Positions 7,188 through 44,314 of a stretch of 64,000 nt of DNA are shown here, piece after piece. The stretch is taken from the sequence record MZ443771.1; one strand, given 5' to 3'. Both the position numbers and the translations under genes were made by a program. Numbering within the stretch: position 1 is the stretch's first letter; every line of letters begins with the position of its first letter. The notes under the pieces were generated by a model. That model did not search any database and had not been told where the DNA came from. It saw nothing but the letters and a program-made list of their open reading frames with translations.

Positions 7188-7243
7188 TCTGCAAATAACT
7201 GGTCAAAATAGCTCTTTATACGCACACGCGCCCGTGATACAAT
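7188..7243 (+). promoter_or_regulatory. Repeated phage promoter (CTGGWCAAAAT box + extended -10)
   Basis: TCTGCAAATAACTGGTCAAAAT-28nt-TACAAT with TG at extended -10. Confidence 0.75.
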
Positions 7244-39785: not shown

Positions 39786-40475
39786 ATGAAACTCTCGCCA
39801 ACTATGTTGAAACGCAGCAAGCTAAACCCTGATGTGTTTGCGCTTGTTCGTGAAGGTGAAGTGCTGTCCTCATTCAAACCGAGCAAGCTCTTTGCGGCGC
39901 TCAATGCCGTTGTTAAAGACAGCGGGCTGAAAGAAGTCGATATCGTGTGGCGTGACGGTACGCGCACTGTAGAACATCTCATTGTTCACCACACGCGCAA
40001 GCTAGTATCGACTGACACAATCATGAACTACTACAACGTGTGCCTGATGCTTCGCGCTCAAGGCGCTGCTGCTAGTCTGTCTACGCCTGTAGACATTCGT
40101 ACTATGTTTGATTCGAACGGGCCTCTGATTAGCGAGATTCACATTGACCCTGAAATCGTCGATAAGCTGGTGGACGCACTTACACCCAAGCATCCTATGT
40201 TTGATGATGCGCATGGCATCTGCGAAGAAGACGATGACATGTTCGACGACGATGACGATTACGACCCTGATGACTTCGACGATGAAGACGATCTCTCCGA
40301 AGATATCTCACCAGAAGAAGATCGTCTGAGCATTAGCGCTTGGGGATATCGCGCCGAAGACTGGACGACTACTCTGACGGACGACGATATTCAGGAAGTG
40401 CATAGCCTCGAAGTGGGTGTTGACCCTGACATTGAATTGCCACTCGCACCTGACGCGAAGGACAAATACTTCTAA
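39786..40475 (+). CDS. Hypothetical protein with acidic C-terminal half
   Basis: SD AAGGTG; D/E-rich tract. Confidence 0.8.
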   Translation: MKLSPTMLKRSKLNPDVFALVREGEVLSSFKPSKLFAALNAVVKDSGLKEVDIVWRDGTRTVEHLIVHHTRKLVSTDTIMNYYNVCLMLRAQGAAASLSTPVDIRTMFDSNGPLISEIHIDPEIVDKLVDALTPKHPMFDDAHGICEEDDDMFDDDDDYDPDDFDDEDDLSEDISPEEDRLSISAWGYRAEDWTTTLTDDDIQEVHSLEVGVDPDIELPLAPDAKDKYF

Positions 40476-40666
40476 TGAAAAGCACTAACGAACTGGTCAA
40501 AGAATTGAAGCAACGCGGCGAGCTTATTATTGACGAGCGAAACAAAGACATGCTGCCTGATTTGACATTCACGCTTGATTGCATGTGTATCACCTACAAG
40601 AAGCGGGAAGTAGAAACAACTAAGCGCGGCCGCGTTGTCAGAATCAAACTGACCAGTATTCACTGA
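40475..40666 (+). CDS. Small hypothetical protein
   Basis: TAATG coupling, SD AAGGA. Confidence 0.65.
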   Translation: MKSTNELVKELKQRGELIIDERNKDMLPDLTFTLDCMCITYKKREVETTKRGRVVRIKLTSIH

Positions 40667-40805
40667 TGTTCTCTTTGGCCCGACTGCCCAGCGATGCTCA
40701 TCCCCCAGAAGAGGTGCCTCGCGCAGAGGCATGGCAGTTCGGGTCCTTTTTGAAGCGCACTTGCGAGTACGCTGCATAAAGTAAAAACAAACAGGAGGCT
40801 GTTGA

Positions 40806-41267
40806 ATGAAATTCACCGAAGTAAGTAAAGATGCACAGGTCATTCTCATGGGTTCCGCACTTGCGGGAGTTATCGAAGTGTTTGGCCGCGATGCCGATGA
40901 CGGCGGGCGCAAGCTGCTGATTACTGCATTGAATCAGATTGGCCTGACGCCTGACGAGTTCAAGGCTCTGATCAACAACATGACAATTTCAGTCAGGGCA
41001 GAAGTTGGTGCAGTGCGTGTGCTCGAAGCAGATCCGGACGATGACTTCGAAGAAGACGCCGAAGACTTCGGTGCCTGTGCTGAGTGCGATCGTCCAGTAG
41101 AAGATTGCGTGTGTGACGATGAAGACGACGACCTCGATACGTCAGAGCAACGTCCAGGCAATCTGAACGATGACGGTCGGACAGACGAAAATGGCTGGCA
41201 GAATCTCGATGAAGATGCCGTCTGCCGTGTATGCCACCAACAAGTGTGTGAGTGCCGAGGCTACTGA
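40806..41267 (+). CDS. Acidic protein with two small Cys clusters
   Basis: CAECDRPVEDCVC and CRVCHQQVCEC; SD AGGAGG. Confidence 0.8.
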   Translation: MKFTEVSKDAQVILMGSALAGVIEVFGRDADDGGRKLLITALNQIGLTPDEFKALINNMTISVRAEVGAVRVLEADPDDDFEEDAEDFGACAECDRPVEDCVCDDEDDDLDTSEQRPGNLNDDGRTDENGWQNLDEDAVCRVCHQQVCECRGY

Positions 41268-41479
41268 TGAGCAGACCGACACAAGACGAAATCAATGGTC
41301 AGATAGCTGCCTCCGAAGAGCAACGCTATAACGAGCAGATCGCTCAATACGATGACTGGACAGACGACGAGCTGGCTGATGCTGTAGAAGCAAACGAGCT
41401 TGTGGGTGAAGACGAAGACGCAAGCGACTACAGCCGCGAAGCGCTGATTCGAATGCTGCTGGCGGATCGACGATTCTAA
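41267..41479 (+). CDS. Small acidic HeH-like protein
   Basis: YDDWTDDELADAVEANEL...DYSREALIRMLLAD. Confidence 0.7.
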   Translation: MSRPTQDEINGQIAASEEQRYNEQIAQYDDWTDDELADAVEANELVGEDEDASDYSREALIRMLLADRRF

Positions 41480-41532
41480 GCAAAAATCTGGACAAAATGA
41501 GGGTTGTCTCAAAACAGCGCCCCTGATACAAT
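41479..41532 (+). promoter_or_regulatory. Repeated phage promoter
   Basis: Box-28nt-TACAAT; TTGTCT 17 nt upstream; extended TG. Confidence 0.8.
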
Positions 41533-41539
41533 ATAAAGA

Positions 41540-41733
41540 CAGCGAGACATGTTCTCTCTGTTATGTGCCTATAACGTTTTGACCGTGTGTTTATCTTTTC
41601 CCGGGCACACGGTCCTTTTTAAAGTCGCTTCGATGAGGCTGCTTTAAAAAGGGTTCAATACCCTTTGAGCGCACCGGGCTTTACGCGGTTTCCGCCTTGT
41701 GTGCTCTCATGCTAAACCGCAAAGGAAATAGAT
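41540..41733 (+). ncRNA. Structured ~195-nt 5' leader or ncRNA with candidate pseudoknot
   Basis: Stems 41581-89/41606-14, 41616-24/41642-50, 41667-74/41699-706, and loop 41685-91 complementary to 41714-20. Confidence 0.55.
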
Positions 41734-42546
41734 ATGCCAAACTTACGTGCTAAACCAGAAGACAAATTCTCTAAAGCTCGTTCTGCGAAGAACTCACCTG
41801 AACGTCAGGCTGCTGCTGAGAAGAAACGCACAACCCCACGCGGTCCGTCTTCTGCTAAACCTCGTCAGTTGCCGCCGGGCTATGGCTATAAGTCAAAAGC
41901 TACAGGCGAACGTGCGCCAGAGCGTGACGATAAAGAGTCCCAGAAACCTGATTTGAGTAAGAAAGACTGGGTTGCTCGTCGTGACGCAACGCCGAAGATG
42001 CGTGATGAAGAACGTGTATTCAATCTCGTTCACGCAATTCTGGCTGCATGGAAAGCGGATATCGGACACGCCGAACATACGGCAGCATCTTCTGGTATCA
42101 TCAAAGTGTCTCGTCGTAAAGTTGAAGGCGCATTGCGCGATCTCAAGAATACGCGCTTCACTAAAATCCCAACGCTCATCAATGAAATTCTGACACACTC
42201 TGATGTGTGTGAGGAATTCGGGATGTGGGTGTACGTCGAGCACGACACGCCGGATTGGATCTTCGTGCGTCTGCCTGAAGACAGCACGCCTGTGCTTCGC
42301 GCTGATATCGTCTACGACCGCACAGGTCAAACTGCTACGACGATCACGACTTCGAGTGAACCGCTGCTTGAAGTCTTAGGGGAAGACGACGAGCCAGAAA
42401 TGCTCGAATGCAATGAGCGCGATATTGAAGACCTTGAAACTAAGGCAATGCGCAAAGAGCTGATCGACAAGGGCATCATCAAGCCAGAAGCTGCTGATAA
42501 GCTGAGTCGACCGGATCTGATGAAGCTGTTAGCGTACTACGCATAA
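41734..42546 (+). CDS. Protein with basic disordered N-terminus and C-terminal HeH-like module
   Basis: K/R/P-rich first ~90 aa; IEDLETKAMRKELIDKGII...KLSRPDLMKLL; SD AAGGA. Confidence 0.8.
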   Translation: MPNLRAKPEDKFSKARSAKNSPERQAAAEKKRTTPRGPSSAKPRQLPPGYGYKSKATGERAPERDDKESQKPDLSKKDWVARRDATPKMRDEERVFNLVHAILAAWKADIGHAEHTAASSGIIKVSRRKVEGALRDLKNTRFTKIPTLINEILTHSDVCEEFGMWVYVEHDTPDWIFVRLPEDSTPVLRADIVYDRTGQTATTITTSSEPLLEVLGEDDEPEMLECNERDIEDLETKAMRKELIDKGIIKPEAADKLSRPDLMKLLAYYA

Positions 42547-42555
42547 GCAATAACG

Positions 42556-42585
42556 AGCAGGGCGCTGAAATATAGCTGCCCTGCT
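42556..42585 (+). terminator. Terminator-like hairpin
   Basis: AGCAGGGC...GCCCTGCT; weak T tract. Confidence 0.55.
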
Positions 42586-42712: not shown

Positions 42713-44314
42713 ATGGCACGTATCGAAACTAACTCTAACCTGGTTGGCAAAACTATCATCCTGCTGAACGGCACCAAATCTAAAATCGAAGATGCTATCG
42801 CGTCCGGTTACAAGGTGAAAGGTCAGAGCAAACGTATCGCAACCCGCTGCGTTATCAAAGAGGGTTCTCACTTCCGTGAGATCGAGCGCATGAATCTGAG
42901 CCAGCTTGAAGATACCGGCGAAGGTTACGTCAAGCTGAAAGAAGCGAAAGCGTCCGGCAAGAAAACTGCCGGTAAGAAAGAAGCTGCAACGCCGAAAGCG
43001 TCCGGCAAGAAAACTTCTGGTAAGAAAGATGCGAAACCGTCGAAAGACAAAGAACCTAAAGTTCGTCGCAAATCTTCCGAAGAGCAGTCCGAAGATTATC
43101 AGAATCTGGCACACGCTATCATCAAAGGCGGCAAAGCTAAACCTGCAGTTGAAATCGAAACTGTTGACGAAGCGCTGACCGATACTGTGGCAAAACGTAT
43201 CGCCGATATCGTGCTTAACACTGACGTTGCGAAAGTGTGCGCTGATAACAAAACGCCGATCGCAAACGCCCTGGATGTTACTTACGGCGCCGAGTATGCT
43301 GCTGATGGTAACGTCATGCAGATCACTCTGAACCTGCAATACGCGAAGCCTGTCAAAGTGCTTGCTCGCCCTACGCTCGAAAATGCAGAAGCTATCGCAA
43401 TGCGAGCGCAGAAAATGATCGCGCCTAAGCTGTCTAAGAAGCTGGCGAAAGCGATTCGTGAAGCGTTCAATATCGAAGACGCAGACGAGCTGGAAGCAGG
43501 TACTATGCTGCTGAAAGACGGCGAAGAGTTTGTCTTCTACGGCGAATCTGCGAAGCACCTCGGCAAAGCGCTGCTGTATGTCGTAGCTACCGACAAGTTC
43601 AAATCTGTCCTTGGCTCTACGCTGGGTGAGTACGAAATCCCAGACGCAGAAGAAGAAAACGACGACGAGGAAGAAGTCGAAGAAGAGGAAGAAGAAGAGG
43701 TCGAAGAGGAAGAGGAAGAAGAAGACGGCGAAGAAGATAGTGAAGAAGACGGCGAAGAAGAAGATGCCGCCGAGTACGAATACGTCAAAGTCACTAAAGA
43801 CCATATCAGCATGGTTAACAAGAAAGTGACCGCGAAGTATCACGCCGCGCTGGCTGAACGCTTCAACACTACCGAAGAAGTTCTCGTCCCTGGCCTCGTA
43901 TTGACTGACGGCGACACAACGTTCGCGTACCTTGGCTGTGATAGCAAAGGCGGCCTGCTCGTTATCGACGTAGAAGCTGAGGCAGATGATGAAGATGTTC
44001 TGCTGTATAGCAAAGCGGATATCAAAACGCTGAACGACTTCAACCCTGTGATCGATAGCGGCCTCGTTTCTGACGACGAAGAAGAAGACGGTGAAGAAGA
44101 TACCGAAGACTTCGAAGACGGTAACGACGATGAAGAAGAAGAAGAAGACGGCGAAGACGAAGAAGAGAGCTTCGAATTTGACGACGAAGAATCTGTTGAC
44201 CTCGAAGATCTGTCTGACGACGAACTGCGTGAACGTGCCGTTGAGCTGGGTCTGACTACACCGCGCAAATCTGAAAACATGACCGGCGCACAACTGCGCA
44301 AGCTGCTGAAATAA
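42713..44314 (+). CDS. Multidomain basic/acidic low-complexity protein with C-terminal HeH-like module
   Basis: SD GAGGAG; K-rich linker, two E/D tracts, duplicated ~45-aa beta-module, LEDLSDDELRERAVELGL...MTGAQLRKLL. Confidence 0.88.
   Translation: MARIETNSNLVGKTIILLNGTKSKIEDAIASGYKVKGQSKRIATRCVIKEGSHFREIERMNLSQLEDTGEGYVKLKEAKASGKKTAGKKEAATPKASGKKTSGKKDAKPSKDKEPKVRRKSSEEQSEDYQNLAHAIIKGGKAKPAVEIETVDEALTDTVAKRIADIVLNTDVAKVCADNKTPIANALDVTYGAEYAADGNVMQITLNLQYAKPVKVLARPTLENAEAIAMRAQKMIAPKLSKKLAKAIREAFNIEDADELEAGTMLLKDGEEFVFYGESAKHLGKALLYVVATDKFKSVLGSTLGEYEIPDAEEENDDEEEVEEEEEEEVEEEEEEEDGEEDSEEDGEEEDAAEYEYVKVTKDHISMVNKKVTAKYHAALAERFNTTEEVLVPGLVLTDGDTTFAYLGCDSKGGLLVIDVEAEADDEDVLLYSKADIKTLNDFNPVIDSGLVSDDEEEDGEEDTEDFEDGNDDEEEEEDGEDEEESFEFDDEESVDLEDLSDDELRERAVELGLTTPRKSENMTGAQLRKLLK

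Follow-up and report, generated by a model that had tools for sequence, protein, structure and literature searches.

A conserved, pseudoknotted leader RNA upstream of a hypothetical gene in Erwinia jumbo phages

The locus and its promoter

The stretch of DNA analysed here (the window, 64 kb in length) is the final part of a 265,871-bp record of an Alexandravirus-type Erwinia jumbo phage. Within it, positions 41540–41733 of the + strand constitute the 195-nt leader of a hypothetical gene, 41734–42546 (+), which encodes a protein of 270 aa. The 2 kb surrounding the leader are identical in Erwinia phage pEa_SNUABM_20 and its near-twins, and show 80–90% identity to about 20 further Erwinia and Dickeya jumbo phages (Alexandravirus, then Rivsvirus, Snuvirus and Yoloswagvirus). 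Nearly all of the genes in the pEa_SNUABM_20 record are annotated as hypothetical and, to our knowledge, nothing is known about gene regulation in these 260-kb phages.

The leader follows a phage promoter at 41488–41532 (+) that is kept in all relatives. The promoter comprises, on the + strand, an upstream motif, CTGGACAAAAT (41488–41498), a –35-like TTGTCT (41504–41509) and an extended –10 element of the form TG-n-TACAAT (41524–41532); it is sigma-70-like, with a 17-nt spacer, and would place the start of the leader transcript at about 41539–41541. The same motif set, which can be written as GCAAA-n-AACTGGACAAAAT, about 28 nt, then TG-n-TAyAAT, recurs some ten times in the 266-kb genome. A scan of the entire genome returned 11 sites, all on the + strand and about 10 of them promoter-like; the good ones all fall within the window, at positions 7199, 11670, 17522, 26365, 29786, 39227, 41488, 42607, 55342 and 59429. 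The family does not occur outside the final 57 kb of the genome, and most of its copies precede a Shine–Dalgarno (SD) sequence of the CUGAGGAG type.

A small hairpin, different in sequence each time, is found at the inferred start site after every promoter of this family. Its counterpart at the 5' end of the present transcript, P0 (41540–41560, +), is supported by folding as well as by this recurrence. The leader measures 195 nt, versus 41–83 nt at the nine other promoter-like sites for which a start codon was found (41–68 nt at the eight of these nine that lie in the window).

A conserved structured RNA

Downstream of P0 the leader contains several further stems. P1 (41581–41620, +) is a G+C-rich hairpin of 9 bp, formed by GACCGTGTG (41581–41589) and CACACGGTC (41606–41614) and followed by a C and a run of five T (41616–41620). 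This run is used again in the A/U-rich base of P2 (41616–41650, +), UUUUUAAAG/CUUUAAAAA, whose arms read TTTTTAAAG (41616–41624) and CTTTAAAAA (41642–41650) in the DNA and enclose an inner stem, 41625–41631/41635–41641. P3 (41648–41666, +), a hairpin of 6–7 bp with a 7-nt loop of the T-loop type, pairs AAAGGGT (41648–41654) with ACCCTTT (41660–41666). P4 (41667–41706, +) consists of 8 + 4 bp, with GAGCGCAC (41667–41674) and GTGTGCTC (41699–41706) as its outer arms, and carries a 14-nt loop at 41680–41693. Seven letters of this loop, GCGGTTT (41685–41691), are complementary to AAACCGC (41714–41720), immediately upstream of the ribosome-binding site. Every stem of the original prediction, which was made from the bare sequence of the window, is present in the leader. 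The same prediction had P2 and P3 competing with each other; both stems do exist, but their overlap amounts to just three nucleotides, all of them A.

Folding of a 206-nt stretch gave –67.8 kcal/mol, with an MFE z-score of –4.09, and none of 200 shuffled sequences was as stable. We collected homologous leaders from GenBank phages, from IMG/VR, metagenomic contigs and one MAG catalogued under a bacterial genus, and from contigs encoding homologues of the downstream protein. A covariance model aligned 30 full-length leaders, 29 of them distinct. Over these 29 sequences, 94.3% of the pair cells were paired, as opposed to 33–53% when the partners were slid, and the observed covariation was reached in none of 500 shuffles. 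Compensatory changes affected all nine pairs of P1, 4 of the 12 pairs of P2 (where G·U pairs are also numerous), 2 of 7 in P3 and 4 of 12 in P4. When more distant members were added, compensatory positions in P4 rose to 8 of 13, and the loop letters UUUACG.GGUUU were invariant. RNAalifold independently recovered P1, P3 and P4. The stems contain many G·U pairs that would be mismatches if read on the other strand, which fits an RNA transcribed from the + strand rather than a palindrome in the DNA.

P3 is not found throughout the family: its loop is replaced in phage SNU7, and the whole hairpin is missing from leaders of the type found in the Dickeya JA phages. Where present, the loop reads UUCAAUA (this phage) or UUCGAUA (most relatives) above a G-C closing pair, and by sequence it conforms to the T-loop motif U-U-C-R-A-N-N.

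A search of Rfam 15 over the whole window yielded no match at the gathering score; with E-values up to 10, the best hit reached 19 bits, against a threshold of 65.7 bits, and was on the wrong strand. ARAGORN found no tRNA in the window. We found no conserved open reading frame in the leader either, as a 32-aa frame at 41549–41647 is without counterpart in the relatives. Since the starts and frames of such ORFs vary, and several leaders have no ORF at all, we rejected the possibility of a leader peptide.

Gene 41734 is preceded by a leader RNA of the + strand that is structured, conserved and outside Rfam. The idea of a structured RNA at this place, put forward in the original prediction, is borne out by its conservation and covariation. 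Our search of the literature on this leader RNA found nothing, and it is an undescribed RNA family of an already known sort, namely the pseudoknotted translational leader.

A separable, terminator-like module

We refer to the segment 41581–41650, composed of P1, the U-run and P2 and perhaps also including P3, as module A. Its position in this clade is some 40 nt past the start site. P1, with a stem of 9 bp (six of them G-C) followed by C and U5, fits the description of an intrinsic terminator as a G+C-rich hairpin plus a U-run, and the U-run is invariant even in those members in which its partner within P2 has changed. P1 is nevertheless atypical for this genome, having a loop of 10–16 nt and a 1-nt spacer before the U-run, whereas the canonical terminators are hairpins of 18–26 nt, of the type GGGnGGC...GCCnCCC, then U5; a scan with the terminator consensus did not call P1.

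Module A turns up in settings where the gene is absent. Phages phB78, SNU30 and SNU52 are devoid of the gene, of P4 and of the pseudoknot; they retain promoter and P0 as well as P1, U-run and P2, and another promoter with the following gene comes directly after. Phages phB78 and SNU30 still show a P3 in decay and the opening letters of P4, meaning that the gene was lost by deletion. Units made of hairpin-CCUUUUUAAAG-hairpin occur in three copies in an intergenic region of phage Yoloswag, one of them ahead of a promoter, and a second such unit in SNU13 is located between two promoters. Within the window, a weaker copy of P1–U5–P2 at 40677–40782 (a large hairpin, CCUUUUUGAAG and a second hairpin) comes directly after gene 40475–40666, with no promoter ahead of it. 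Contig L074, a distant relative, has a hairpin like P1, a U-run and a further hairpin upstream of the promoter, the usual place for a terminator. Leaders in the JA phages and in contigs L081 and L074 span only about 85–95 nt and are made up of P0, P4, the pseudoknot and the SD sequence, without P1–P3.

From these comparisons we conclude that P1–U5–P2 is a separable, terminator-like module. The original prediction had treated the 195 nt as a single riboregulator, a view that we abandon: P1, U-run and P2 occur without the gene, at other sites and, in the distant relative, upstream of the promoter, and are missing from the Dickeya JA leaders, so that the leader consists of two modules. In our model, module A would end transcripts arriving from upstream genes and would also attenuate those originating at the gene's own promoter, leaving an RNA of about 80 nt as a by-product; P2 would act as a second hairpin that clamps the U-run. 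Comparable situations are represented by the promoter-proximal terminators of lambdoid phages, such as pR'–tR' (6S RNA) and oop, where downstream expression needs read-through. At the present locus, too, a hairpin and a U-run come within about 80 nt of a strong promoter.

The association of a repeated promoter with a stem-loop also recalls the PeSL cassettes of T4-like phages, in which a sigma-70-like promoter and a stem-loop flank small orphan genes (PMC2839356, PMC4122927). The present locus is PeSL-like in that the promoter travels with a stem-loop and in that the presence or absence of a gene between relatives is bounded by cassettes. It differs in the phage group and in the motif, as well as in having the stem-loop after the start site and P1–P2 inside the leader.

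Public sequencing runs containing the leader sequence include wastewater metatranscriptomes. Four runs labelled as metatranscriptome or RNA gave short, mixed-strain contigs and no transcript ends. The contigs extend across the promoter and P1 and accumulate over the leader, a pattern that may reflect DNA carry-over and that would be expected from the conservation of the leader alone.

The pseudoknot at the ribosome-binding site

The remainder of the leader, 41667–41733, which we call module B, consists of P4, the pseudoknot and the SD sequence and represents the gene-linked core. Its second stem, S2 (41685–41720, +), results from the pairing of 41685–41691, in the P4 loop, with 41714–41720. 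S2 comprises 7 bp and its 3' arm ends one base 5' of the SD sequence AAGGA (41722–41726), leaving both this element and the start codon (41734–41736; together 41722–41736, +) outside the helix. By pairing with this 3' arm, the 14-nt loop of P4 would generate an H-type pseudoknot. Its loops L1 (41680–41684), L2 (41692–41693) and L3 (41707–41713), all on the + strand, would be 5, 2 and 7 nt long, and the crossing of a 12–13-bp stem by the 7-nt L3 is feasible by arithmetic only. The S2 duplex was calculated at –10.5 kcal/mol, a value matched by 3.5% of composition-preserving shuffles, and its two arms were unpaired at 0.86 and 0.72 in the nested ensemble. We saw no conserved alternative pairing of the pseudoknot tail in the members of the family. 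One candidate, a hairpin that would hide the AUG, was discarded, being weak (–1 to –3.6 kcal/mol) and not conserved.

Across the clade of the Erwinia phages the arms of S2 are invariant, save for one C-to-U change that gives a G·U pair, and this invariance prevents covariation from being judged within the clade. More distant homologues of the gene product were therefore of use; they came from a profile search of 1.8 billion proteins, and a recognisable P4 and tail were found in L074, in the Dickeya phages JA29, JA33, JA13 and JA11, and in two IMG/VR contigs. In the distant leaders (those of the Dickeya JA phages and of three metagenomic contigs) the two arms have changed jointly, from GCGGUUU/AAACCGC to GGGGUUU/AAAUCCC, with pairing kept. 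Over the 21 distinct leaders aligned, the pair 41686–41719 is C-G in 17 and G-C in 4, the pair 41688–41717 is G-C in 14 and G·U in 7, and no cell is broken, S2 being 100% paired in 21 out of 21.

By sequence, then, the element qualifies as an H-type pseudoknot, with complementarity between a loop and a 3' strand, interleaved stems and covariation of S2 at one exchanged pair. Covariation of 41685–41691/41714–41720 in relatives was one of the checks attached to the original prediction, and it came out in favour of the helix: 41686–41719 is exchanged on both sides and all cells are paired, though the evidence is thin. The exchange is a true compensatory change, which probably arose from a single event in one clade.

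The predicted loop-to-tail pseudoknot beside the SD also proved to be the best-conserved part of the leader. For the P4 loop, the linker, the 3' arm and the SD, the mean identity to the window is 97%, compared with 74% for the best-conserved coding domain and 54% for its third codon positions. Around the SD, the letters AAAGGAA are unchanged in all aligned members except one (AUAGGAA in L055). In general, the loops, linker, 3' arm and SD (L1, which reads UUUAC, L2, L3 and the SD flank) are near-invariant while the stems drift. Such constancy of unpaired letters suggests sequence-specific recognition or tertiary contacts. A U·A-U triplex, in which the UUU of L1 would contact three A-U pairs of S2, is geometrically plausible.

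Module B is present at every locus that carries the gene, and is missing together with it in phB78, SNU30 and SNU52. It occurs once in the 266-kb genome, and a search of that genome for further pseudoknot arms or T-loop hairpins, as a regulon would have, found none. Pattern scans with the pseudoknot arms fixed retrieved the same phages and chance matches only.

The product of gene 41734

The 270-aa product begins with a conserved basic N-terminal peptide, continues with a variable, basic and disordered stretch, a strongly conserved core (aa 88–195) and an acidic linker, and ends with an optional C-terminal tail resembling SAP/HeH domains. At 90% identity its homologues fall into 56 clusters, which come exclusively from phages or metagenomes and carry no functional name. 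The protein matched nothing in Pfam, in PHROGs or among PDB sequences, and no RNA-binding domain was recognised in it. An AlphaFold model of moderate confidence (pLDDT 73.6) gave nothing significant when compared with the PDB by Foldseek, and the weak hits leaned towards winged-helix DNA-binding domains. Structure matches in the ESM Atlas were also weak and winged-helix-like, and the feature matches there included SAP/HeH families. Judging from these models and matches, it is plausible that the product binds nucleic acids.

Two neighbouring proteins, encoded at 41252–41479 and 42713–44314, share with the product of 41734–42546 a similar SAP/HeH-like tail (S/T-x-x-x-L-I/M/R-K/R-L/M-L), and all three combine low-complexity stretches that are very basic with others that are very acidic. 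The three may make up a family of nucleic-acid-associated proteins.

Possible functions of the pseudoknot module

The reading that we tentatively prefer is that module B serves as a translational operator on the 5' border of the ribosome-binding site, bound by a trans-acting factor that limits initiation. The factor would recognise the folded site and restrict binding of the 30S subunit; it would most probably be a protein, and plausibly the product of gene 41734 itself, whose basic N-terminus the original prediction put forward as the part that might bind. Autogenous control typically goes with strict linkage to a single gene, as exemplified by rpsO/S15 and by T4 genes 32, 43 and regA. Module B combines such strict linkage with a conservation exceeding that of the gene, which is what would generally be expected of an autogenous translational operator.

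On the other hand, S2 ends one base before the SD without covering it. Repression is consequently not self-evident, and the pseudoknot could equally keep the SD open. A further point against the operator is that the product has no recognised RNA-binding domain. The position of the SD outside the helix makes a constitutive element the main rival explanation, which we regard as possible but rather unlikely: module B would operate with no trans-acting factor, shielding the mRNA from decay in concert with the 5' hairpins and holding the SD single-stranded, in other words as an enhancer of translation or stability and not as a switch. The location of the SD just beyond the pseudoknot stem, the otherwise unstructured tail in all members, and the protective hairpin with which each promoter of the class starts its transcript are consistent with this. 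However, if pairing were all that mattered the loops would be free to drift, yet the unpaired L1, L2, L3 and SD flanks are near-invariant and it is the stems that change freely.

Another explanation, improbable in our estimate and compatible with the operator reading, concerns the other end of the leader. The promoter, P0, P1 and U-run would give a stand-alone sRNA of about 80 nt, the leader role of the rest being secondary. Units made of promoter, hairpin and U-run do persist without the gene in phB78, SNU30 and SNU52 and recur after a promoter in SNU13 and Yoloswag, and the predicted 81-nt product folds with hairpins at both its 5' and 3' ends. Against this, the interval from P0 to P1 shows little conservation from one genus to another and offers no clear seed, and the same hairpin unit also sits directly behind genes with no promoter ahead, like an ordinary terminator. 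A stand-alone sRNA is possible only for the part from the promoter to the U-run.

Returning to module B, we assign a similarly low probability to its being a compact sensor RNA, together with P3 in the Erwinia-phage clade, for a specific ligand or host factor instead of the gene's own product. Such a sensor would be built around a U·A-U major-groove triplex and, in this clade, a docked T-loop. If it were real, it would amount to a new class of phage riboswitch or tRNA mimic controlling a nucleic-acid-binding protein of jumbo phages.

A riboswitch with a small-ligand pseudoknot aptamer of the SAM-II or preQ1-II architecture seems to us very unlikely. In its favour are the H-type pseudoknot next to the SD, loop letters that do not vary, and a U-rich L1 running along three A-U pairs, where a major-groove triplex may form, but there is no Rfam match even at an E-value of 10 and the element is tied to one gene family of non-metabolic function, as is usual for protein-mediated autogenous control.

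Least credible of all is that the repeats are inverted-repeat DNA operators or a decayed tRNA gene, since the weak winged-helix and Rep-like fold hints for the product are outweighed by stems that keep pairing rather than sequence, by the many G·U pairs (mismatches on the other strand) and by an interleaved arm order that amounts to pseudoknot topology, and since the T-loop-like loop of P3 and one 95-nt tRNA-Glu, called by ARAGORN and annotated in GenBank over P1–P3 of pEa_SNUABM_13, stand against the failure of ARAGORN to find any tRNA in the window or in seven relatives scanned and the lack of an acceptor stem.

The leader flags gene 41734 as one that is probably under tight control, and the RNA gives access to post-transcriptional regulation in jumbo phages that infect plant pathogens, some of these phages serving as biocontrol agents. 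Natural compensatory variants of the pseudoknot are available, e.g., in the Dickeya JA phages, where 41686 has changed from C to G along with 41719 from G to C. A protein partner, if found, would establish a new phage operator–repressor pair.

Relation to known pseudoknotted leaders

The operator of E. coli rpsO (encoding S15) forms an H-type pseudoknot between a hairpin loop and a sequence adjacent to the SD, affording autogenous control of initiation. Module B is akin to it in that a hairpin loop of an mRNA leader is predicted to pair beside the SD. There is no relation of sequence or family between the two, however, and in module B the second stem includes no part of the SD or the AUG, the first stem has 12–13 bp and the regulatory factor is putative.

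The leader of T4 gene 32 offers a second parallel, being a phage leader with a conserved pseudoknot linked to a single gene. That pseudoknot reportedly lies far upstream of the ribosome-binding site and nucleates the cooperative binding of the ssDNA-binding protein along an unstructured A/U tract. Here, in contrast, only 1 nt separates the pseudoknot from the SD, and the product has neither features of an SSB nor a match to a known family, so that the leader is not of the gene 32 type.

Finally, the riboswitches SAM-II, preQ1-II, preQ1-III and guanidine-III resemble module B as compact pseudoknots at the ribosome-binding site, with invariant loop letters and a U-rich loop facing A-U pairs. Module B departs from them in having no Rfam match, in leaving the SD outside the helix and in accompanying a single phage gene family of non-metabolic function.

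Observations on annotation

The leader RNA allows two corrections of existing annotation, concerning a tRNA-Glu and a CDS placed over it. The tRNA-Glu(ttc) of pEa_SNUABM_13 (95 nt; L002, 1474–1568, equivalent to MZ475891.1, 241695–241789) was the single ARAGORN call at the eight loci scanned, with none in the sister phage SNU7, and probably represents a false positive. We rejected a tRNA or tmRNA reading, nothing having been found apart from this one isolated call in SNU13. No sequence complementary to the letters after P3 was found that could complete an acceptor stem. A resemblance of the pseudoknot arms to helix 45 of 16S rRNA was considered and dropped, the order of the strands being reversed.

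In Yoloswag, gp311 (L017, 758–955) is annotated as a CDS of 65 aa that lies wholly over the structured leader and overlaps the start of the true gene. This CDS is probably spurious.

Two contigs of the same phage group are filed under bacteria: a 266-kb contig (L048, GCA_007314735.1) within an assembly of Salmonella Infantis, and another (L059, JAVWLC010000023.1) within a MAG named 'Raoultibacter'. These filings point to contamination, mis-binning or a wider host range of the group.

The linker of the pseudoknot (UCAUGCU) contains an out-of-frame AUG at 41709–41711, which opens a frame of 14 codons running across the true start. It has no SD of its own and is gone in members whose linker reads UCAUAUU.

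Between the stop codon of gene 41734 and the next promoter, at 42556–42583, there is a hairpin of the form GCAGGGC...GCCCUGC that is not followed by a U-run. Its 3' half coincides with the downstream boundary of the deletion in phB78 and SNU30.
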